Position numbers and translations under genes: made by a program. From Mytilus edulis (Eukaryota): a stretch of 64,000 nt of DNA. The notes below the pieces were generated by a model. It had not been told where the DNA came from. It saw only the letters and a program-made list of their open reading frames with translations, and searched no databases. Below, piece by piece: positions 1 through 53,551 of the stretch (positions within the stretch are counted from its first letter, which is position 1; every line of letters starts with the position of its first letter). Location: the NCBI RefSeq assembly GCF_963676685.1, contig NC_092354.1, positions 58,218,001 to 58,282,000 on the forward strand, written 5' to 3'.

Positions 1-1035
1 TTTTTAAATGAATGCTTAGTGATGTTGAATGATCACAACAAAAGAATGTGCATTACCATGGTAGCCTAACATTTCATTTTCAGAAATTTAAAGAAGAAAC
101 TTAAAAAATCCAATTTGGTATTCCTTCAAAATGCACCGATAAAATCCTTGAAATTAACATAATACAGAGTTCTCATCTACTAGTTTTTATATGCCAAAAA
201 TCAGATATTTGTTATTTCAAATAAGAAAAATAATACATCTTGGTCATATGGTCATACAGAAATTTGATAGGAAAAATATATAGGAGTGCAAAATTCTACC
301 AGAGTTATTTCCCTTAGTACAACTGTTTCGTTGTTTATGTTGAAAATGAAAATAGTTTTTGAAGCAGACACACGAAATTGTTTGCAATTTTAACACAATC
401 TGCACTACAGATGAGTGTTCTGACGATGTAACTGATATCAACATATATGACAAATATATAATTGAAACTGAATATGGTCTTTTGCCAAATAATTGTACTG
501 ATTTTGATATTTGTTCAACCCATTTAACCAAATATTGAAAAGAAGATCGGATTTGAGAAATAGAAAAGTATGTCAGCTACCTTCTTTGATAAGTGCACAT
601 CCTCCAGTAGCATCACATTCTTTTGTCGGTACTAAAAAGCCAAAGCCTATACGCAATACCACCATCAATGATGTAGAGAAGATTCAGAAGTGTTATGGCC
701 TCACACTTCCTATTGGAACACGTAAGTTAAATAAATCTAAATTATATGTGACTGTTTATTTTATTTTTCAATTGCCTGGTAGTTAACAGTTGTTTGATAT
801 TGTTTTGCATTTATTCAACACTTGTTGATATCATGGAGTGGTGTCATGTTATTGATTATCCGTACTGCTCTGTTAGTTTGGATATTTATGCATGTTTTTT
901 TCTTAATGATCCTTTATGACCTGTTTAAATTTATACTTTAAATTAAATAAACCCATGATTTGTATCTCGCCTAGTCAAAAAGCGACTCATACGTATCCTG
1001 TTGCCAGCATTGGTGGCATACGTTGTGATTTGATC

Positions 1036-1297
1036 TAGTTTATTTGTGAACCACTAGCATAATGCCACTAAATACATAATAAATGTAGTTTATTTGTGAA
1101 CCACTAGCATAATGCCACTAAATACATAATAAATGTAGTTTATTTGTGAACCACTAGCATAATGCCACTAAATACATAATAAATGTAGTTTATTTGTGAA
1201 CCACTAGCATAATGCCACTAAATACATAATAAATGTAGTTTATTTGTGAACCACTAGCATAATGCCACTAAATACATAATAAATGTAGTTTATTTGT
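1036..1297. repeat. Minisatellite, 50-bp unit, ~5.2 identical copies
   Basis: Unit tagtttatttgtgaaccactagcataatgccactaaatacataataaatg starts at 1036, 1086, 1136, 1186, 1236, plus a partial copy. Confidence 0.97.
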
Positions 1298-1774
1298 TAT
1301 GTTATATACCTTCACATTTATTTAAAATAATTTCAGATTCATCTTTCAAAAGGAAGAGAAATAGCAGATCAGTCATCAGTGACAAAAAGATTATTCATTT
1401 ACAGAAGTCGTTTTCAACCAACTTTAAAGTTTTTATTAGAACGACCGAGAGTTGCAATTGATGATAACCCGGAGATTGGTGGACATTGACAGAAGAAAGG
1501 AAGATAAAGCTATTCAATGTAAACCAATGCCAATAAGATGGAAATATGCATAGACCGTTGTCTTAATGATGACAAATAATTTTAAATATGACATTAGAAC
1601 AGTATGCTTTATGTTTTACATGCAAAGCAAAAGGTAATTTCACTGATTGACAGACTTTTGTAGAAGCTTCATTTGGTGAAGTACGGTAACCTTGGCAACC
1701 GAAACTCTGTTTATCAATATTATAAAGCTCAAAAAAAAATTCAAATATTAAATAAAAAATCAGCACAAAAAAGT

Positions 1775-2290
1775 ATATAGATCTTCCGATTAATATAAAT
1801 TACAAAGTGCGAAATTTCATGCGCTTATGATAAAAACATTTTTTAAGATACAGTGGGATATGTGAAATCACTCCTTTTCCCCCTTTTTTTTTACAAAAAA
1901 CTCAATAACTCTTTAATAAAATATTGAATCATAAACAAAACGTATCCAGGTCTTCAGATTACAAGTGTGCAATTTTTCCCGAAAATCATAACTAGGTTTT
2001 TTGAGATACGGCGCGAAAGGTGAAAAAAAACTTTAAAAAAACAACTTAATAAATCTAAAATAAATATTTGAATCATCACCAACAGATAGACAGATCTTTA
2101 AATTAATATAGCTAAGAAGTATGCGAAATTTCATGCAATAATGAAAAAAAGTTTTGAGATACGGCGCGAAATGTGAAAAAACACCACCCCTGTTTTAGTT
2201 ACACAGTCCCTCAATTTAAATATATGTTTCCCCGACATATTTCGTACGATAACACATGAATGGAATATTTGTTAAAAATAAACATCAAAA
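1775..2290. repeat. Diverged ~150-bp tandem repeat belonging to an interspersed family
   Basis: Motif 'gtgcgaaatttcatgc...ttttgagatacggcgcga...tgtgaaaaaa' recurs about 3 times; the same family occurs at ~12820-13030 and ~22470-22680. Confidence 0.6.
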
Positions 2291-2843
2291 CATGTTAGAA
2301 AGATTGTGATTACACGGACATTATTGAATACATCCTGTATATCGATTGTAATGAAATCAGTCAACATAAACCTGTAACATCTGTTGTCATGGTTATCTTT
2401 CAAAAATATATTTAAAATCATATTTCCTGGAATTCTAATAAATAGATTTCACGTCTTTTTCATCGATCTTAAAAGTTATATCGTAGCATATATTTTCTGG
2501 GCGATATCTTTTTGAGCTCAATTTATTTGCACCAACGCTTCTTCTGCGCCACTTCATTTTAAAACTATCGGTATCATTTGCGCCAATAAAATAAAACATA
2601 TAACTACGCCAAATTTATTTATTTGTTTTTATTTATATATATCAACTAAATGATTGACTCCTCAATTTTCCGGATTTGGTACTAGTTGCTTACTTACTGG
2701 CTGTATTAAAGTAATTTAAATACAAAAAAAACATACTGAATTAAAACGTTCACTCATGGCTATTTATTTTAGGTATTTTGGACATACAGCTCTTCAGCGA
2801 TTTCGGTACTTAAACGTCTTCGGATTTCAAATGTTTGGCTTTG

Positions 2844-2887
2844 AGTGTACCTGATGAAGATAAATCCAGAAAAGCGCGTCGGACGCA
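2844..2887 (+). ncRNA. Type I minimal hammerhead ribozyme (second family, somewhat degenerate)
   Basis: gtgtac-CTGATGA-agataaatcca-GAAA-agcgcg-TC-ggacgc; core intact, stems imperfect. Confidence 0.6.
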
Positions 2888-3867
2888 AGAAAATATTAAA
2901 CGTTTTGTTTTCAATATATTTACAGTTAAAACTGTAATATGTCTATGTTCATCATTAAACAGAGTCCCTCGTAGACATATATTGCACTCGCAAGCTCGTG
3001 CAATATAAAATTCTACTCGGGACAATAATCCCCAATATTTATGTAATAACCCTATATTATTGTATATCAACAATATATTTCATAATTATAAACACACCAA
3101 AATTTAGCTTGATATCATTTTAACTAGTGGACGTACAGCTCCACATAAGTGCCATCTTTACGCTCACAGAACAGTATCATTTGAAATAATTGGAACACCT
3201 TCTGCCGTCTGTGACCCTCACTGATAGTCAAGACAGTTAAGAAACTCCGCAATGTATAAGACAAATCAAGTGTATCCCCTTATGAACAATACTTATTCAA
3301 AACATCATAATTAAACCTAACATAATGGTGAGTGAAAACCCCATACGTAAAAAAACAAGTGATCAAAATATAACACACGATAACAACAACGCATATTCCT
3401 GACGATGTTAAATGTTCTACGATGCAGGATTGTCTACAATCATATGGCAGTACTGATATACAATTCTTTTGTTAAGAAATAACAGGACAGTAAATGAAGA
3501 GTTTAGCACGTCGGTTGTCTAAGCTGACAACAGCAACACTTAAACTACAGTACAATACTGAAATGCCTTGAATGAACTGTATCATTCAATTTTGTATTTC
3601 TATTTTTTAGTTATTGTCATTTCACTTTACGTTCCGCTAAATAGATGACGTCCTCTAATTAGATAATTAATAGTTTGGTGACAACGTTGAACCCATTTAT
3701 TATATCGAATTTGAAATAAAGGATACAACAATCTCTGGGACAAGTTTGCAATTCCGCTAAGTGCAGAAGTTGTCACCTTAATTTTTGGAGTTAAGTCAAA
3801 ATGATGTTGATAACTTGGTTGGTATTGGTTCCCTGATATTTGTCCTAAAAATTTTTGGCTCTATCAC

Positions 3868-14560: not shown

Positions 14561-15810
14561 CAACGCATCGACTATGTATAAATGCATGTGTGTGGACATT
14601 TTGTTTCCAAGCATTTTTTTCTCCTAGCTACATATTAATGCAAGATATTTGAAGAATTAAACAAATATCAAGTATTAATGACAAAAATATTTACAAAAAA
14701 ACCGAGGTACAACTAGTGTGTACGGCAATGACCGAAAAACGCTGTATGCTTTCCAAATGTTTTACATACAATCTGCAAAATTTGTTGAATAAGACAAAAA
14801 ATGACTCTCACTTGACCATCACATTAACTAAAAAATAAGTTCCTATTCACAAGGAGTTACAATGATCTGAATTGTTAAGCACGTCAAACAATTTATCGAT
14901 TAAACCGCTTACTGATTCAAAGACCCTGTGTTACCTTTCACTTTATTTTTGTCATGTTTTAAAATCCTGGATTTCAATGCGAGTTCTGTTGTTCATAGAC
15001 ATATTTTGTGTGCTGTATTGTTAAGTGTTGGTTTGTGCTTGATTTGGCTTTTCGCTGAGGTCTCTCTTTTTATCCTACTTTAGGTAACTGTAAAAACAAT
15101 AGACTACTTTGAGACTGGAAAGTAAAATGTTCACATTTGAAATATCAAAAAATAAAGTTAAAAAACTTCATGTAAATTTAGTCGGAGTTACTACTGTCAT
15201 CAATGAGAAATCTGAGTACCGGTGCGTTAAAGAGGGTGTGTATCACAGTTAAGCGATATAGATAAAATATCCGGCTATTTATCCAAAAAATAATATTCAA
15301 AACTAATCTATTTACTTAAAAATATATGATAAATTATGTCTTTAAATGCTACTATTTAGTCCTACATTCCTTTATTAATCGCATATAATCGTGTATGCGT
15401 TGCTGTAATCCTTGTGTACTCATGCAATACTCTACTTACAATACTTTGTACCACTGCATACTGTCATCCCAATTCTGTAAAAATCAAAACAACTACTAGA
15501 AACTCTTTGGCATTTATAGTAAAACCTCTTCTAACAATTCAATGTATCAAAGCATAATCTGAGTTCGATAACACTTTATCGACATCGTTCCATGCATTTT
15601 TTTTGCCTAAGATGCATTTTCTGACACCCTGTTACCACGACATCAAAAATGTGCTCATGTAAAAAATAAAAATACAAAAATGTTGAAATCAACACTGAAA
15701 ACGCCAATAAACATCAAGCTATTATACCTTATAATATTAATACTTTCAACAATTTAGAAAAGAAAAAAAACACACACGTGAGTGTTACCAAGGTTTAAAA
15801 AAAAAACACT

Positions 15811-16102
15811 TAAGGAATGACTTTCATAATTTTTCTGTCTATGAAGAAATAACATAAAAAGTTTGGTGCACACAGAATAACGCGTGTACCGGGTTATTAA
15901 ACAGTGTGCACCACATTTTTTATGTTATTTCGAATAGACAGAAACATTTTACAGTCATTTCTTATAATTTAAATCTTGATTCCATTTTAAACCGTAGAAA
16001 AACATGAAAAAACGTTGAAGACGTCACGGTCACTATGTCTGTCGGCTGATAACAAAATAACGTCAGCCAATCAGGAGACGCATTACATCCAAAATTAAAT
16101 TA
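15811..16102. mobile_element. Non-autonomous Crypton-like element with terminal hairpin
   Basis: ~150-bp imperfect hairpin 15811-15965; absent from the paralogous site at ~26163 (aaacactaggttatg). Confidence 0.75.
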
Positions 16103-16103
16103 T

Positions 16104-16560
16104 TAGGTTATGTTGGTTTCAATATAGAATTATGCATTGTATATTGGCGACAAATGGTGTATTCTTTAAAATGAACCTTGTTAATTGTAATGTGTGTACA
16201 CTTTCTAAGAAGAGGCAGAAACTATAGAAAACTTACTTTGGGGTTTTCATTTTGTGGCGCACATTTTGCACAATCTAAATTTATGGATTTTTGATATAAT
16301 TCATATCGAAATTCCACTAGAATTGAATATTTTCAATTTTGGGTCTATGAATATTATAAATTGAATTTTATTTAAAATAAAGTTATATGATCAAGTATTT
16401 TATTTGCAGATGCGAAATGCAGGACCTCATGTAAAAGGACTTCAAAATTACATAAAAGAAAACTTGATTTTAGAGAAACATAGTTACTCAAAACATTCGA
16501 ATGTGGAAGAATACAACTCGTACTGGAACTCTTGTGCTAAGGTGATTGTTTTAATTTAAA
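16104..16560 (+). mobile_element. Degraded L1/Tx1-like LINE ORF2 C-terminal (zf-RVT) fragment; paralog ~26165-26680
   Basis: LCWFQYRIMHCILATNGVFFKMNLVNCNVCT..EAETIENLLWG resembles the zf-RVT consensus FQYKILHRILxTN...CxxC...ETIEHLFWxC. Confidence 0.6.
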
Positions 16561-16849
16561 TGAGGTAAATACATATACATATGTGTGTATATGAGTATTT
16601 GAAAGTATTTGTATACTGGTATACAATAAAAATAAATATATTTTGATACCTATAAGTTTTTGCAGAAAAAAATAAACTAGAAAATTTAAAAAAAAAAAAA
16701 CAACACAAAACTACAAGGAAAATTCAAAACGGAATGTCTCGTATCAAATTGCAGAACCAAAATTATAAACGAATGAAAAACAACTGTCATATTTGCCTTT
16801 CCTTACTTTGATCAGACATTTCCTTATGCAACAAATGTCGAAATGCATT

Positions 16850-17214
16850 TAAGAATTGAATGCTGCTTTTTGTAAATTTATTGGGGTGTAAAAGCGTTAA
16901 CCGAAGTACATTTTGTATGAAGCGCGGAAGCGCTTCATACTAAAAATGTGCGCACGGTCACGCTTTTACAACCATATAAAGTTACAAAAAGAAGCATTCA
17001 ATACTTATAACTACATTTTTTTAGCTAGAATCATGAAAACACGATTTTTATCAAGTTTTCATTTAATTTACCTGTGCACTTTATTGTGGGGCCTCGTGTC
17101 ATCATGAATGATAAATGTTATTGTCTAATACAATTGTTTCAGGAATAGCACGTGATGTGCAGTTAGCCAATCAGAATAACGTATTATAATGAAACATACA
17201 TCTAATGTAATTAT
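16850..17214. mobile_element. Non-autonomous Crypton-like element with terminal hairpin (second family)
   Basis: Hairpin ~16850-17008 centred on gaagcgc-ggaa-gcgcttc; empty site at ~27276-27285 (gcatttagtt). Confidence 0.8.
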
Positions 17215-18364
17215 TTAGTTATAAAATGATGACATGCATCATGTTTATGTTTATGATAATATAACGGATTTACTTCAAATGTGATTTGCATGATATTTCT
17301 TATAATAAAGACCTTTACTAAATACAAGTCGGTGTGCAATTCTTCCAGAAATAGTTTGAGGCCATTACTATCCTGTGTATCGAAACGACTTCCCTCTAAG
17401 TGAAAATATTTCGTTAATATTAGCCATTTTCCTTGTTTGACCGAGTATTAATCAAGCGATATTGCTACCTTTAATAGTTTCTTGTAGAAGCGAGCATATT
17501 TTAATCGATGTATTTTCATGTTGGATGGTGCAAGTTTGTTTAGTTTGTACTCACATAAAAAGGGATGATGCTAATAAAGTACCCAGCTGATACAAAATTT
17601 TTGTTGTGGTGATGTATAAGTTACCTCCCACGTGCACTCTGTCTTATCTTAAGTGTCATTCTCTGTAATTCATGGGACTGTTCACATCAATGTCACAGAT
17701 TTTAAATATCTTTTTCAATATCAAGCCAATATGATGCCCTGATAACAAAAATAACTTTCATTTTTGTTTTGGAGGTTTCTGTTGCCATGGTTACAGGGAC
17801 CATATATATAAGCCCAGTATCAGAGTAGCAAAATCTCAAAATACATAATTTTTCAACTTTCATTATTTTTAACAAATATACATTTTTAGCCTAAATCATA
17901 AGTATACTGAACAAATAAAGGTCTGGAATAACACAATAAAGTAAATAGACATTGACTTGAATTCATTAAAAAAATTAAAACTTGTATATAAAAAGTGCCG
18001 ATTTTGCATTTTTTTCAAAATGCTGAAAAAGGCATTTGGATACATTTTTAGCTGTTACAGGTAAAACATGTACTCGAGATGCGACTATGACAAAAGAATT
18101 GGCATTAACAAAAGAGATTAACAGGAAACTTGAAAACAGTTTTATTTTGCAGCTAGATGTCACATAATATTTATTCTTAGTTAGGTCTGGAAGTTCTAAG
18201 AAACTTGATTATACAACACGGTCTGTGTCTAGAATGAAACTATTTTTTGTGACGCTAAATGAAACTTACAAAACCTTTGAATAGACTTATTAAGAAGGGA
18301 TATAATTACGATACTGTTGTCAAGTCATTAAAGATTGCATATTTTGGCGTTAATATTGAGTCAC

Positions 18365-47670: not shown

Positions 47671-48817
47671 TACATATTATAGGTACTGAAAGATAGGCAA
47701 AGGATACCAAAAGGACTTTTAAACTAATGTTCGGTGGAAGCCAAGGCTCCGTATTGAATGTCATACTTTGACCTATCAGTGTTAACGTTTTATACATTGG
47801 GACTTGAATGGAGAGTTGTCTAACTGGCACCCATACCATATCTTCTTGTTTATATACTAAGTCGAAAATAAACTGACAAAGTCATGGCTAAAAAAAAAAA
47901 AAAAAAAAAATACAGACAAACAACTGTACACAAAATACGACATAGAAACCCAAGCCTAAGACTAAGCATCACAAACCCCACTAAAATTGGGGGTAGTCTC
48001 AGGTGTTCCGAAAGGGTAAGCAGATACCGCTTCACATGTGACAACCGTTATGTTGTTCGTATTAGCACAAACTAGGTGTGCAGTCTAATTCAAATTAAAG
48101 AACATTAAAACACGTAGTTAAGATGAGTAGCAGCGGCCCATCCCTTTCCCTCCGAATTTGACTTTCACGAATAAGACTTGTCACCGAGTTTGTGATTTGA
48201 CAGCCTTTATATTTTGATATATAAAGTAAACAAATACGTGGGGAATGGCCCTATCCCTTTCTTTACAAGTTTCAAATCAGTATTTAATGAGCAGTCTTAA
48301 AAATTAATTTAGACCTTCAATTGCATCTTTATGAACTGAATACCGACACAATTATTGTATTGACATAAATTTTGATATAAGACGAACTGGACATAATGCT
48401 TCATTCTTATAAAAAAAAAACTTACAATCATTTGCCGAACAAAAACAAGTAAAGAAAGAACTAGTCCTTTCTTTTCTTTTTTTGGCGATTACCTGATCAC
48501 TTAAAATTTTGTCTACTAAATGATATAAATTTTTAAAAGCATCTTAAATTCACAAACAACTTTCATTTCCGTCAAATTATTGCTTTTGAGCGACAAGTAT
48601 GCTAAATTTCAAAATAGAGGCTGAAAAAAGGAACGTGTTGTTTTTTTACATAAACATTTTGTGTTTTAGTAAACAAACATTTACCTTTTCAAACTTCAAA
48701 CAAAAAATGCAAAAAAGTGTTGCTTGTACTTTATTGCCTATATCTGTATATTTTATAGTTAAATATATATATATATATAAGATTGTTGGGTTGATGTTTA
48801 GACGAGTTGTATACTAT

Positions 48818-51800
48818 GGTATTATTGCGTAACAATTTTCATATTGGCTTAGTTATAGGTCCGAGGGTACCATATTGGCCTGAGGCGAAGCCGAAGGCCA
48901 ATATGGCTGCCCGAGGACCTATAACTAAGCCAATATGAAAATTGTTACGCAATGATACCTTTATTAATTAACCAGTCCAATATGAACTCTAGCCGGGCCA
49001 ATATGAAGATTGAAAATAGTGTGAAAATCTGACATTCAGGACTTCAATAGTAGTGATTTGAATATGTATCAATGAAAATTGAGGATTTTAATCAAAACAA
49101 TAAAATAGTAACAATTTTATTAAATAATCAACAGTAAATAAACACAACAAGTAAAAAACATGTTTTTATCTAGTTTTCAGATTAAAGCTCTTGGCTGCAG
49201 TTTATAGTATTCTTTCTTTCCCCTGAGTATATGTTAATATTGAAAACACCACCTGTTATAGTTGCACCTGCAAACATGGCCATTGGGTTGTCATGTTTGT
49301 TAGCAGTTTGATTATTTGTATTTGATACATTTGCATTTAAATTATTATGAACTAATGTATTTGAGTTTGAAAGTTCACAAGGTTCCTCTGAATCTGATGT
49401 CGTCTGTAAATCTGAGTTCGGCAACATGACCTTAGATATTGTGTGAGAAGCTTGTTGCTGTTGTTCAATAGACGGTACTGAATAATGAGTTAAGGTACTA
49501 ATGCCTTTCCAGCCTCCTAATTGAGCAACTTCATTGGCAGGTCTACCATTTTGAAGTAGTGTGGTAGCAAAAGTTTTACGTCCCGAATGATTAACCTTTC
49601 TTCCTTGAAGATCTCCTTTTTCTGCCATATTTTTTACCATTTTACCTAATTTATCTTTGCCTATGGTTTGGCGAGTGTACCATATTTCCTCATGTTTATT
49701 ATCTAAAGGCCTCAAATAAAATCTATGTTCATCAGTTAATGTGTCTTAAGGTCTATGCCGTTTGTATTCCTTGTAAACATGAATAGGGCAATTACTTCCT
49801 CCTTCCCCGAAAATCTTTGGCGTAATATCCCGGAAATCCCTGCTTTTTGCTCCACTACGGGTTTTGGTGCTTCTTTCTGAAAAAAGTATGCTTATGTCAA
49901 TATTTAAAGAAGAATTATCCTTCCTGTCTGTACAAAACTTTCACTTTTATATAACAAAAAACATGTATTGCATAGTAAATAATATTTTGTTAAATATAAA
50001 ACAATGGTTAATATCCTTAAAAGCACAAATTACCAACTTTTGTCAGGACTGTTGTACATGTACATCCATTATCCACAGAAGTATATATTCTGTGATTTCT
50101 AAAAGATTTAAAATATCAACTATTTAAATGATGGAAATCATAACATAATCTCACCATTAAATTCCAAATACTCCTTTCCATCAGATGTAGCTTTTAACTT
50201 GACATCTCCCCATGTCATGTTAACATGGTCTTGTCGACCTCGTACATTTGTCGTAGACCAAAGTATGTTGCATTATTTAAAAACACAGCATTCAGTAATG
50301 CATCAGGGTTTTCTGGAAAAAAAAAAGAACTTAACTAAAATACATGTATCTTAATGTAAATATCCAACTTAAAATAGTATTTAAAGGACAAATACTGTAT
50401 CAAAATGCAAAAGACCTCTGGAGACACTCTCATTGTTCAAGACCTTATGTGTATTTTAAACATTTTTTATTACAACCATTTAATAATCAGGGATGGATAG
50501 AGGGCGACAAGGAAATAAAATAATTTGTTTGCCACAAGGTTAGAAAAATGTTTAATTAAAAGTTACTGACTGACACGCTGGAATACAACATTTTTTTTTA
50601 AACTTACGTGTTCCAATAACGCCTTTCTCCCTCAAGATTTGGATTTCCTCAGTCGTCAAAGGTTCAGCTCTGTTTGGCTTACTGCCCTTGCCCAATGACT
50701 TTAATGCCTTTCGCTTCGCTTCTAATACCCGTCTTGTGTGGTTGAACTCAGGATCCTTTTTAATACTGAAACATTAAAGAAAAGATATGCATAATATCTG
50801 ACATGTAATTTTTGTATGTACATGTTTTATACTTATAGCAAAGAGAAACCAAGGAATATTCATTGTACACAAGCTTAAGATCATCAAAACCACATTGACC
50901 CAGATGATATATATAGTTTTTACCAAAAAAAATGACACAAGGCTAAAATTAAAATATTGGCACTGAATATTCGAGTCATAATGCTTGACAGAATAATGCA
51001 AAGGCTATCATGCTATATCAAGACAAGGGAGTTACATGTCTCACAGATATCAAATAATCTACATGAAAATAATCGTACCTTATACTACTTTTTGAGTCCT
51101 TCAAATGTCTATCCAAGCTGTTGAACATAGAGGATAAAGAGTCAGGCTCATATTCGTCACCATTTTTCTTCAGGACTCCAAGAAAAAATCTTGATAACAG
51201 ACTGTCCAAGTCTTTGGCAGGTATTTCCACTGAATCACGCATTTCTCCAACAGATATGAAAAAATCCAGCATCACTTTCAAGTCACTCTTTGTTTTAGTT
51301 TTTGTGTTCTTGTTAACACTTAAAGCTAGAAAAGAGTCAGTGTCTTCATCAGTGACAGAGCGAAACCTCTTGCTACTCGAGCTATTTTCTTTGTCTGATT
51401 CGTCAATCTCATGATTCTGTGCATTTTCAATGTCCTGCAGAATTTCATTTGGGAAGTTGAAATTCGCTGAATCAACTTCTTCCAGAATCAAATTTCCTTC
51501 CCCATTGACATCTGCGAGATTTCTCTTGATGTACTCTGCCTCCCTATTAGATAAATCGTCGTAGTGAAAATAGTCTTCAACTAACGCATCCATCGCATCA
51601 TCTATATTTTTTATAGAGCTATTGCTCCATCGTTTTGTTGTCATTTTCTCCTGTCAGACGACACTAGCCGTAGTTCTCTAGAGTTATCGGGATTTCAACC
51701 GATTAGTCTAGAGCTAATCGAATATGCTAATATTGGGCTTGCTAAACCCGGGCCAATCCGTATTGGCCTTATAGGACAAAATTATCGATTTGGCAGTTTT

Positions 51801-51839
51801 ACTCGTATTTAGTCAAATAAGCTCCAGTTAATTAATAAA
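48818..51839 (-). mobile_element. Crypton-type tyrosine-recombinase DNA transposon, near full length
   Basis: 142-bp terminal hairpin 48818-48959, 13-bp inverted repeat 48960-48972/51827-51839, internal spliced YR gene. Confidence 0.85.
49182..51644 (-). pseudogene. Crypton tyrosine recombinase (DUF3504/KCTD1-QRICH1-ZMYM-like), four exons, two lesions
   Basis: Exons 51644-51079, 50765-50608, 50312-50155, 49876-49182 (GT-AG); motifs KKNGDEYEPDSL, LEAKRKALKSLGKG, FGLRG, ERSTKTR, CPIHVY, NHSGRKT, GGWK, THYS; 11-bp insertion at 50240-50250 and TAA at 49748-49746. Confidence 0.9.
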
Positions 51840-53551
51840 ACATCAGAATCTGACTGACGAAGGATATCTGTTATCCGAAATATTTATGAATAATTACATT
51901 TATAGTTCCTTTTTATATCATTGGTGTTGTTATGTACACTTTTTAGGCGTTTATATATATATTGCAATGTTTTCTTAGTCATTGGTTTCTGTTGTTGTAT
52001 CTGATGTTTCCCACTATTTTCTCTTCTTAATCTAGCATGGTAGTATAATATTTGTAATTCTCTTTGTCCTTTATATATATGGAATAATTATGTAGTGTGC
52101 ATATCCCCCTAGTCTACTAATTTGTTTTAGTCATCACCTTTGTAGAATTATTTTCCCGTTTCAGTTTTGAAACAAATTCCATCACAAAAGTGCATTTTAA
52201 TGTACAATGTGCAACTATAAATTTAAAGTTAACACCGTATTTGTTTAGAAATAGAAATCTTTAATGGTGCCATCATAGAAATATGACACTCTTGGTATAA
52301 ATTCGTTTCAAAACAGAAACTGGAAGATATTCCTGCAGAGGTGATGACTCATACGAAAAAAACAATACACTGGGGAATATCCCCACTGCACAATCTATTT
52401 GTGGAGATTTTTTCCCAAGCTCTATTTCTGTATTGTTCTCTGATGCCGTCATCATATAAATGTATATAACAGGCCACAACTATGGGGGGAAAGTTATTAT
52501 TTCATTTGAACTACTTTACAGTGACCGCGAGTACTTTCAGATTGGTACTTTGTAGTTAATATTGTTTTACAGTAGTTTATATACTTTTTACGAATTTGAT
52601 GAGTCCAGCCATTTCAAACTAATTTTAACAACTTTACAATATCATTATTGATATAATTTATCTGGAAACGACATTAAAAAAAAACCTGTAAAAAACCTAT
52701 TAGTGTTTTTCTATTTTACCGAATGAACAGATTTGTTTTAAACATTGTACAACAGCTGTGTTAATGAGTTTAAAAAAAAACATCGGCGAACAACCTTTTA
52801 ATTTCGGCTTTTGTTTATGATTATATCTTTTTGAACGTCGATTCTACTGAATGCTCCAAATATAGTTGAGATGACCTAATGGCTAAAAGATGACACTTAA
52901 AATTAAGATGAGGTACTAATGCTAATGAGGCAACTCTCCACCAAATGACATAGAAGTTAACAAATATTGATCACCGTACAACAATGAGCAAAATCTATAC
53001 CGATAGTAAGCTATAAAAGGCCCCGAAATAACCATAATAGGGACAAATAACGAAAGTTCATCACATAAACGAATCCCAGAAGTAAACACTCTCGGGTTTA
53101 CAAAAGAAGTTTGACCTTTTTTTTTTAAATCTATTGTAAATGCAAATAATGAACTCTCCAACCTCTAAGCAGATTTAACATGTTTTATTAATTTGAGTCC
53201 GATTGCTACAATAACTATAATTTCAACACCCTCCACTCAGTTTTATATGTTTTCAAAAACTGGCAGTCGAAAGTATCTTCAACGAATGAAAAACAGAAGT
53301 ATCGCAATATGAGCAAATGTAACAAAACACAATACCATCATTAAAATAGTGTAAATCTCATTCTTTTAATTGGTTTTATGTGAGTATAATATTCTTTAAG
53401 CTAATAAAAAGTAGATGAGCTCAATAGTGTATAACTTCATTCAATCAATTAAAATGAATTCGCAAAAAAAGGGTACATTTATGATATGATCTATACGATA
53501 TCAAGACATTTAAATCATTAGCACAAGGAAACATGTAAACGTCCACATTGC

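Follow-up and report, generated by a model that had tools for sequence, protein, structure and literature searches.

Anatomy of the element and its recombinase gene

We analyzed a 64,000-nucleotide stretch of the Mytilus edulis genome (assembly GCF_963676685.1, contig NC_092354.1, positions 58,218,001 to 58,282,000 of the forward strand), hereafter called the window, in whose numbering all positions are given. The window contains one slightly broken copy of a young Crypton family, called F1 here, that has at least 14 near-full copies. As summarized in Table 1, this copy consists of a long palindrome at the left end that is followed by an inverse copy of the right end, a tyrosine-recombinase gene on the minus strand, and a short right terminus.

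Table 1. Features of the F1 Crypton copy in the window
Feature	Position	Strand	Description
F1 copy	48815-51838	.	3,024 bp; ends TATGG...TTAATTAATAA
Terminal trinucleotide	48815-48817	+	TAT; part of the element, at the inferred crossover point, absent from the inner complement
Palindrome (arms a and a')	48818-48959	+	142 nt, imperfect; outer arms 48818-48867 and 48910-48959 (50 nt, 94% complementary), inner arms 48870-48886 and 48890-48906; predicted helices separated by 2x2 GA/GA loops, mini-hairpin at the apex
Apex	48885-48891	+	GCGAAGC; 2-bp stem with a GAA triloop
t'	48961-48972	+	TTATTAATTAAC; exact inverse of the right terminal 12-mer; T48960 lies between a' and t'
t	51827-51838	+	GTTAATTAATAA; right terminal 12-mer
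8-mer repeats	48840-49005	.	Six copies of CCAATATG/CATATTGG; starts 48840 and 48871 (inverted), 48898, 48930, 48977 and 48998 (direct); probably recombinase binding motifs
TATTGG motifs	51731 and 51761		Related to the 8-mer; near the right end
Tyrosine-recombinase gene	49182-51644	-	Four exons: 51644-51079, 50765-50608, 50312-50155 and 49876-49182; stop at 49748, 11-nt insertion at about 50240

Spliced RNA contigs from one run (X18) skip 49877-50154 and 50766-51078, which shows transcription and splicing of the gene, while the remaining intron (50313-50607) is inferred from contig ends and GT..AG borders. The two lesions listed in Table 1 were read as differences from the run consensus. The open frame of the last exon is 187 aa in this copy, whereas among the other 14 full last-exon hits it is 252 aa in 11, 237 aa in 2 and 236 aa in 1. 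In profile searches made with the exons taken separately, PF00589 scored 32.7 bits against a cut-off of 27.1 on exon 4, and the residues H43, R46 and Y78 (HxxR and Y) are invariant in 18 aligned relatives. A GLRGRQ motif was also read by eye in exon 3 of an intact copy. For the N-terminal QRICH1/DUF3504-type region of the CryptonA subgroup, PF25561 scored 25.5 bits, below its cut-off of 30.8. Only the four recombinase exons are supported in the 3-kb element, with no open reading frame for a reverse transcriptase, RNase H or another transposase, and there are no terminal inverted repeats. Six of the eight occurrences of the 8-mer in the whole 64-kb window lie within or just beyond the palindrome.

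Ends, target sites and the predicted circle joint

We next fixed the ends of the element by comparing copies. When 48700-52000 was used as the query, other copies matched query positions 112-3140 at 97-99%. An empty site present in the satellite units of locus L007 reads ...catat^agatt..., where ^ marks the insertion point, and a second paralogous site was obtained by comparing loci L009 and L020. The TAT trinucleotide is present in 16 of 16 insertions and absent from the empty site, Logan contigs (records 7, 17 and 27) end at 51838, and there is no target-site duplication. The target logo over the 16 insertions is A12/16 T15/16 A14/16 n ^, which resembles the element's own ...ATAA end, and one site has a 5-nt AATAA microhomology. 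The window copy itself cannot fix the ends, as its right flank (51840-51940) is a piece of another high-copy repeat that the left flank does not continue, and the contigs from runs X1 and X8 that skip the element also skip that piece.

A preliminary description, made from the sequence alone, had placed the element at 48818-51839, with a 142-bp hairpin capped by GCGAAGC and followed directly by the perfect inverse of the right end, and had stated that the reverse complement of 48948-48972 equals the right end joined to the left end. What it described is present in the sequence and its observation is confirmed, with three corrections. Specifically, the 13-mer 48960-48972 is 100% complementary to 51827-51839, but the reverse complement of 48948-48972 differs from the joined ends at one base (C against T, a T·G pair in the hairpin). 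In addition, the element starts 3 nt further left, at 48815, and ends 1 nt earlier, at 51838 (...AATAA), with base 51839 belonging to the target. The real joint is therefore ...TTAATTAATAA/TATGGTATT... (the slash marking the joint), and the inner complement lacks the TAT.

The joined ends look like a classic recombinase core, with inverted half-sites around a 6-8-nt spacer as read from the family sequences. In contrast, the spacer of the inner copy is only 4-5 nt and the inner copy lacks the TAT(A/G)G crossover motif, indicating that it is more likely a complement than a third recombination site. No body or apex inversion appears among the copies, so the inner copy is not used as an inversion site. 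Contigs from four runs gave splice joints and an empty allele but no go-back joint, although contigs cannot show absence, and no circle, head-to-tail F1 joint or single-stranded form was seen.

A terminal palindrome and a right-end complement recur in diverged families

Folded as DNA, 48805-48985 gives -66.8 kcal/mol against -16.0 +/- 2.7 for 200 shuffles (z = -18.7), and 0 of the shuffles fold as well. We asked whether this structure extends beyond F1. A palindrome of 109-183 nt lies 3' of the recombinase gene in 10 of 13 diverged loci, in 6 of 12 further loci and in 3 of 7 metagenome contigs, and is thus missing in 3 of 13 and 6 of 12 of the loci. The preliminary description had named loss of conservation or co-variation of the junction complement as grounds for rejecting its reading. 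We found that t' abuts the hairpin and is the exact inverse of the family's own right end in six families whose end sequences differ: F1 (12 nt), F2 (AGTTGGTTAATAAA), F3 (AAGTATATGATAAAA), F4 (AAATATGTGATAAA), F5 (AAGTTGGTTAATAA) and F6 (23 nt). The complement is kept and co-varies with the right end in these families, so the reading passes this test. In F1, F2 and F4 the match ends where homology between copies ends. The other families start TATAG or TATATG, and the true joint always carries 2-4 extra bases, TAT(A), that the inner copy lacks. The right-end complement was not found in four single-copy loci (L056, L062, L067 and L086) within the DNA examined, where the copies may be truncated or longer. 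A natural head-to-tail F3 joint, at locus L078, has t-TAT-a and is predicted to fold as one hairpin, with 13 bp of t:t', a loop at TAT and then a:a' (-60.8 kcal/mol, z = -16.9).

The palindrome arms also co-vary. The arms are 82-92% self-complementary while 5' arms of different families are only 42-87% alike, apart from the close pair F3/L078 at 95%. In an alignment of 6 related sequences, 10 of 62 pairs show compensatory changes. The apex design (GA loop, 3-5-bp stem, 3-4-nt loop, GA loop) recurs in other families but with other loop sequences (AAC, AGC, GCA, GGA or 4-nt loops), so GCGAAGC is specific to F1 and was rejected as a conserved signal.

Non-autonomous derivatives exist, including one 370-bp family with this layout that has very many copies in this genome. 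We also considered a 196-bp derivative at locus L024 (hairpin, t' and 38 bp of the right end) as a minimal mobile unit, but it is unique in the genome and we draw no conclusion from it.

Hairpin mismatches are strongly one-sided

We then counted the mismatches in 12 hairpins on the strand antisense to the gene. They comprise R·R 61 and G·T 23 against Y·Y 12 and A·C 4 (binomial p of 5e-9 for R·R against Y·Y and 3e-4 for G·T against A·C). The antisense strand is predicted to fold better in 11 of 12 hairpins and equally in 1, and the C-GA-G/C-GA-G loops are kept even in L086, whose arms are unrelated in sequence. This points to selection on a single-strand fold. However, the counts are not independent, as the families share descent and the GA loops are homologous, the computed energy gap between strands is small (0-8.5 kcal/mol out of about 65), and G·U pairs and tandem GA mismatches would also suit an RNA fold.

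Discussion

The window copy belongs to a Crypton, a DNA transposon moved by its own tyrosine recombinase. In this mussel clade the two ends, once joined, form a classic recombinase core, which in F1 has the half-sites AATTAATA and TATTATTG around the spacer A/TATGG. On the strand antisense to the gene, the palindrome (a:a') and the adjoining t', which pairs with the right end t, would rebuild that core as a duplex within a single strand, with both half-sites fully paired and the crossover bases TAT(A) looped out. We propose that this fold is the working substrate, which brings the two ends together for recombinase-catalyzed excision or circle closure and presents the joint for integration next to ATAn targets. 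It would work like the DIRS internal complementary region and like the folded single-strand sites of integrons (attC) or CTX phage. While the anatomy, ends, target, conservation and co-variation across families, strand-biased mismatches, and transcription and splicing of the gene are established by our analysis, it is inferred that DNA rather than RNA folds, that the recombinase acts on the fold, that circles or single-stranded DNA arise, and what the chemistry is. As the joined ends form a complete double-strand core on their own, a fold is not strictly needed, and we regard this model as about as likely as not. The interpretation in the preliminary description, that a single strand could fold so that both termini are splinted as by a DIRS internal complementary region, or that the element carries a third recombination site, is partly supported. 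The Crypton assignment and the internal complement of the circle joint hold and the single-strand idea gains support from the one-sided mismatches, but the match to the joint is not exact and a third site is unlikely.

A tentative alternative is that only double-stranded DNA is used. In this view the excised circle recombines through its joint core, the palindrome is a symmetric array of recombinase binding motifs (CCAATATG and similar) that builds a nucleoprotein complex, and the inner a'-t' is an uncleavable look-alike site used for architecture or regulation. This is the accepted model for Cryptons, the half-site layout fits the usual site layout quoted in PMC3212892, and the 8-mers are repeated on both arms and beyond t'. 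It does not explain, however, why mismatches are G·T and purine·purine on one strand, why the GA dinucleotides keep the same strand on both arms, which breaks the symmetry expected of inverted binding sites, or why t' must be base-for-base complementary to t over 12-23 nt in families with different sequences. It is unlikely that the hairpin serves something other than recombination, such as an origin or priming signal for second-strand synthesis or for replication of an extrachromosomal copy, a transcribed RNA hairpin (a small-RNA precursor or regulatory RNA), or an insulator or terminator behind the gene. The hairpin does lie 3' of the gene, beyond the transcript end at about 49104, G·U pairs and tandem GA are also typical of RNA structure, and an Rfam search gave only sub-threshold generic miRNA-hairpin matches. 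However, the RNA contigs of run X18 (one run only) give no depth over 48748-48995, and this reading does not explain the exact abutting complement of the far end or why the palindrome starts 3 nt from the terminus in every family. Finally, although the 13-mers look like short terminal inverted repeats, a neighboring foldback insertion beside an element bounded by the 13-bp pair is refuted by the empty site, which shows that the hairpin moves with the element, by the 16 insertions that all start with TAT plus the hairpin, and by recurrence of the layout in six families.

The closest known elements are Crypton DNA transposons, possibly CryptonA-like (Goodwin et al. 2003; Kojima & Jurka 2011, PMC3212892). 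Shared features are a single intron-bearing tyrosine-recombinase gene, the lack of a reverse transcriptase, no target duplication but only microhomology with the target, non-autonomous derivatives, and the left end TATGG, a motif reported at CryptonS termini (PMC3212892). A 2022 curation guide calls a short direct repeat the only distinguishing feature (PMC8969392), whereas here there is a conserved 110-180-nt terminal palindrome plus a complement of the far end. We found no description of this design in print, although Additional file 1 of PMC3212892, which lists Crypton termini, may bear on the statement that animal Cryptons lack terminal repeats.

The internal complementary region of DIRS retrotransposons (the Cappello model, tested in PMC7192593) is likewise complementary to both element ends placed side by side, that is, to the circle joint. 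In DIRS-1 this region is essential, the intermediates are single-stranded DNA, a junction trinucleotide is also discussed, and the enzyme class is the same. The Crypton differs in having no reverse transcriptase, RNA intermediate or inverted terminal repeats, in that the complement of the left end is directly contiguous with that end as a hairpin, in that the right-end part is only 12-23 nt against 55 nt in DIRS-1, and in that nothing has to be rebuilt by synthesis. It is therefore not a DIRS element and would only work like one in this respect.

A third comparison is with the folded single-strand sites of bacterial tyrosine recombinases, integron attC and CTX phage attP(+) (see PMC3053210 and PMC8946536). 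There, too, an imperfect palindrome rebuilds two paired half-sites when one strand folds, the central region is unpaired or has looped-out bases at the crossover, there is strand bias, and the junction switches at a single point. For the Crypton this resemblance rests on in silico folding, half-sites read from sequence, and mismatch counts that are not phylogenetically independent. The Crypton is a eukaryotic nuclear transposon, its stem is far longer and modular with GA/GA loops, and the fold would join two distant ends.

A bolder reading, which is possible but doubtful on present evidence, is that this clade of animal Cryptons, and the abundant short hairpin elements that copy its layout, transposes through a folded single-stranded DNA intermediate in which the recombinase would cut and rejoin one strand on a self-templated joint, an ICR-like splint or an attC-like site. 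If true, that would be the first single-strand pathway for a eukaryotic tyrosine-recombinase transposon, and it would also suggest that the DIRS internal complementary region descends from a Crypton-type end structure.

How Cryptons move has never been shown, and the texts we consulted describe them as having no end structure beyond a few repeated bases (PMC3212892, PMC8969392, PMC13465315). A conserved, co-varying terminal hairpin that mirrors the circle joint gives a diagnostic for finding Crypton ends and their non-autonomous offspring, and a minimal set of cis elements for building a transposition assay. It also gives a concrete, testable single-strand mechanism that would link eukaryotic Cryptons with DIRS elements and with bacterial integron and CTX-type recombination.

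The predicted terminal fold and its relation to the element ends

We first examined whether the features assigned to this element in the preliminary description are present in the sequence. The observation held: the left-end palindrome, the perfect inverse of the right end that follows it and the apex GCGAAGC are all found in the sequence (see table). The one exception is that the reverse complement of 48948-48972, which had been described as equal to the right end joined to the left end, differs from it by one base, which is a T·G pair in the stem. When folded in silico as single-stranded DNA, 48805-48985 gives -66.8 kcal/mol as compared to -16.0 +/- 2.7 for 200 shuffles (z = -18.7).

Features of the Crypton copy and of the other loci discussed. 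Single coordinates and ranges are window positions unless a genome (G000) contig is named.
Feature	Position	Strand	Remarks
Element	48815-51838		TAT belongs to the element; 51839 belongs to the target
Palindrome, outer arms (a, a')	48818-48867 and 48910-48959		50 nt, 94% complementary
Palindrome, inner pair	48870-48886 / 48890-48906
Apex GCGAAGC	48885-48891
13-mer abutting the palindrome	48960-48972		perfectly inverse to 51827-51839
Repeated motif CCAATATG	48840-49005		6 of the 8 occurrences in the whole window
RNA contig coverage	49104-51662	minus	one PacBio transcriptome run
Spliced-out segments	49877-50154 and 50766-51078	minus	from RNA contigs
Third intron	50313-50607		inferred
Stop	49748		relative to the consensus of three DNA runs
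11-nt insertion	near 50240		relative to the consensus of three DNA runs
Missing 10 nt (AATACGGAAA)	51754		present in all three DNA runs
(TA)n run	48766-48780		short, just upstream of the insertion; contigs seem to be cut there
Piece of unrelated repeat	51840-51940		abuts the right end of the Crypton
Short hairpin elements	16846-17217 and 15805-16105		first about 370 bp
Three head-to-tail copies of the first short element	G000:C1:101830662-101831749
Locus L007	G000:C4:48460579-48466617		F1 copy in a tandem repeat (satellite)
Locus L024	G000:C9:12909561-12912743, 673-868	reverse	196-bp deletion derivative
Locus L078	G000:C5:76517900-76519337, 863-1037		head-to-tail joint of two F3 copies

The element is a Crypton with many related copies

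A search of the 1.37-Gb genome (14 large contigs) with 48700-52000 gave 71 matches. Fourteen of these are near-full copies at 97-99% identity, two more are copies interrupted by insertions, and there are also about 850-bp non-autonomous derivatives that keep about 170 bp of each end. With the exons searched separately, the last exon matches Pfam Phage_integrase (32.7 bits, cut-off 27.1), while the first exon matches the QRICH1 domain below threshold. HxxR and the tyrosine are invariant in 18 aligned relatives. The window copy is itself broken by a stop and by an 11-nt insertion, and its last-exon frame is open for 187 aa, as compared to 252 aa in 11 of the other 14 full last-exon hits, 237 aa in 2 and 236 aa in 1. 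This copy also lacks 10 nt near its right end; with them, the right subterminal region holds a small palindrome, GGCCAATACGG-AAAAA-TCCGTATTGGCC.

We next determined the true ends by comparing 16 distinct insertions of this family (F1). In these the constant sequence begins with TATGG and ends with ...TTAATTAATAA, with the next base being A in 6 and T in 10. The F1 copy at locus L007 sits in a tandem repeat whose neighboring units, about 220 and 450 bp apart, give the empty site ...gaagtcatat^agattg..., while the filled site is ...catat^TATGG...AATAA^agattg (^ marks the junction). The element therefore occupies 48815-51838, rather than the 48818-51839 of the preliminary description, and there is no duplication of the target. 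A second paralogous site (locus L009 against L020) reads ...gcaataa^attc..., which is a 5-nt AATAA microhomology with the right end of the element. The four bases to the left of insertions are A in 12/16, T in 15/16, A in 14/16 and then any base, which resembles the element's own terminal ATAA. In the three DNA runs, the listed contigs that cover the right end also stop at 51838. The piece of repeat that abuts this end is unrelated and of very high copy number (summed contig depth above 300,000 in run X1), with other copies of that repeat continuing leftwards with different sequence. Contigs of two other runs that lack the Crypton also lack this piece (in X1 with a joint of 48813 to 51941, and in X8), so the two may have arrived together, or the site was rearranged.

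The layout is conserved and co-varies among families

Conservation and co-variation of the junction complement had been proposed as a test of the preliminary description, and we addressed this with a protein search of the genome using the last exon, which found 151 matches. Among 13 loci of other families with 42-66% identity, 10 have a palindrome of 109-183 nt just 3' of the gene, one has only a 41-nt palindrome and two have none. Among 12 further loci (33-45% identity), 6 have one within 1.4 kb. Outside this genome the evidence rests on metagenome contigs of unknown origin, where 3 of 7 have a palindrome, one of them cut by the contig end.

Where the other end could be reached, the segment abutting the hairpin is the exact inverse of that family's own right end, although several families rest on only one or two copies. 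Specifically, in F2 (three copies, L058, L060 and L061, about 3.96 kb) this segment is AGTTGGTTAATAAA, ending where the copies stop being alike, with a fourth copy, L063, lacking the right end. In F3 (L066) it is AAGTATATGATAAAA, in F4 (L082/L083, which are 94.8% alike) it is AAATATGTGATAAA, in F5 (L057) it is AAGTTGGTTAATAA, and in F6 (metagenome contig L093) it is 23 nt long. In contrast, no convincing match was found in the DNA examined for the single copies L056, L062, L067 and L086.

Additional support comes from changes within the hairpins. A related non-autonomous family (F1b, about 80% alike) shows paired changes in the first 12 stem positions. An alignment of six related hairpins gives 62 consensus pairs, of which ten have compensatory double changes, and the one-sided changes that keep a pair go to G·U; a few cells are broken, including two C·A. 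Across 12 hairpins the arms are 82-92% self-complementary, while the 5' arms of different families are 42-87% alike, apart from the close pair F3/L078 at 95%.

Locus L024 contains a unique 196-bp deletion derivative made of TAT + hairpin + t' (the inverse of the right end) + the last 38 bp of the right end, which is inserted in the interior of a non-autonomous element. Further on, a right end is followed directly by the inverted hairpin of an L062-like element, a nested or recombined arrangement. Two short elements in the window also repeat the layout of a few bases, then a hairpin of about 155 nt, then the inverse of the far end. The first of these is very abundant, with 6,190 first-look candidates for the combined query and 40 scored copies at 96-98% spanning query 1087-1458, and it also occurs as three head-to-tail copies. 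Its 11-mer next to the hairpin matches the right end at 10 of 11 positions. These two are probably non-autonomous relatives moved by such recombinases.

The joint and its internal complement are not identical

Every family starts with TAT(A/G)G or TATATG, and the inner complement lacks 2-4 of these bases. Locus L078 provides a natural head-to-tail joint of F3, ...GATAAG-TAT-AGATTATT..., with the right-end region of a second copy lying upstream. It folds in silico as one hairpin with 13 bp of t:t' (the right end and its inverse), a small loop at TAT, and then the arms a:a', at -60.8 kcal/mol (z = -16.9). As read by eye, each joint has inverted half-sites around a 6-8-nt spacer that holds the crossover. 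In F1 this is AATTAATA [A^TATGG] TATTATTG, in F2 it is GGTTAATA [AA^TATAG] TATTAATG, and in F4 it is GTGATAA [A^TATAGA] TTATTAC. That is the usual layout of tyrosine-recombinase sites (PMC3212892). The inner copy has the same half-sites but a spacer of 4-5 nt and no TAT(A/G)G, and we take it to be a complement rather than a third crossover site. In line with this, no copy shows an inverted body or apex. TATGG is also the terminal motif reported for CryptonS (PMC3212892).

Non-Watson-Crick oppositions are biased to one strand

We then counted the non-Watson-Crick oppositions in 12 hairpins, read on the strand antisense to the gene, which are R·R 61, G·T 23, Y·Y 12 and A·C 4. The binomial p is 5e-9 for R·R against Y·Y and 3e-4 for G·T against A·C, although these events are not independent because the families share descent. 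Most R·R cases are 2x2 loops of the form C-GA-G opposite C-GA-G, placed between helices of about 17-45 bp and on both sides of a mini-hairpin apex, and they persist in L086, whose arm sequence is unrelated. That strand folds better in 11 of the 12 hairpins and equally in 1. Tandem sheared G·A in a Y-GA-R context and GNA triloops are stable DNA motifs. Inverted protein-binding sites would instead put TC on the second arm, and a palindrome kept only as duplex has no reason to favor G·T over A·C.

Comparison with known elements and a proposed mechanism

Kojima and Jurka wrote that they found no terminal repeats in animal Cryptons (PMC3212892), and a 2022 curation guide (PMC8969392) names a short direct repeat as the only feature. 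The words hairpin, palindrome, stem-loop and circular have no occurrence in a 2026 CryptonA paper. Full-text literature searches on Crypton hairpins, palindromes, single-stranded forms and internal complementary regions, and on Cryptons of Mytilus or bivalves, listed no description of this layout, with subscription journals, Repbase Reports and supplements outside their reach. In DIRS-1 the 88-nt internal complementary region is complementary to both ends side by side and is essential, with intermediates that are single-stranded cDNA (PMC7192593). The Crypton segment has the same geometry, and it differs in having no reverse transcription and in having the left-end complement contiguous with that end as a hairpin.

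The interpretation in the preliminary description, that a single strand could fold so that both termini are splinted or that a third recombination site is present, is partly supported; the first alternative is our best reading, while the second is not favored. The ends, the target, the co-varying layout and the one-sided oppositions are read from the sequence, whereas folding of one strand in the cell and any action of the recombinase on it are inferred, and nothing here shows a circle or single-stranded DNA. The main rival, which we regard as possible but less likely, is ordinary double-strand recombination at the joint, with the palindrome acting as an array of binding motifs such as the repeated CCAATATG. 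The sharp single switch point at both junctions, with TAT always at the left and AATAA always at the right, fits one strand exchange finished by replication, although it also fits a very short overlap. In our best reading, which we hold to be about as likely as not, one strand folds and the pairings a:a' and t:t' rebuild the joint core as a duplex with TAT looped out, and the recombinase would use this fold to bring the ends together and to integrate next to ATAn.
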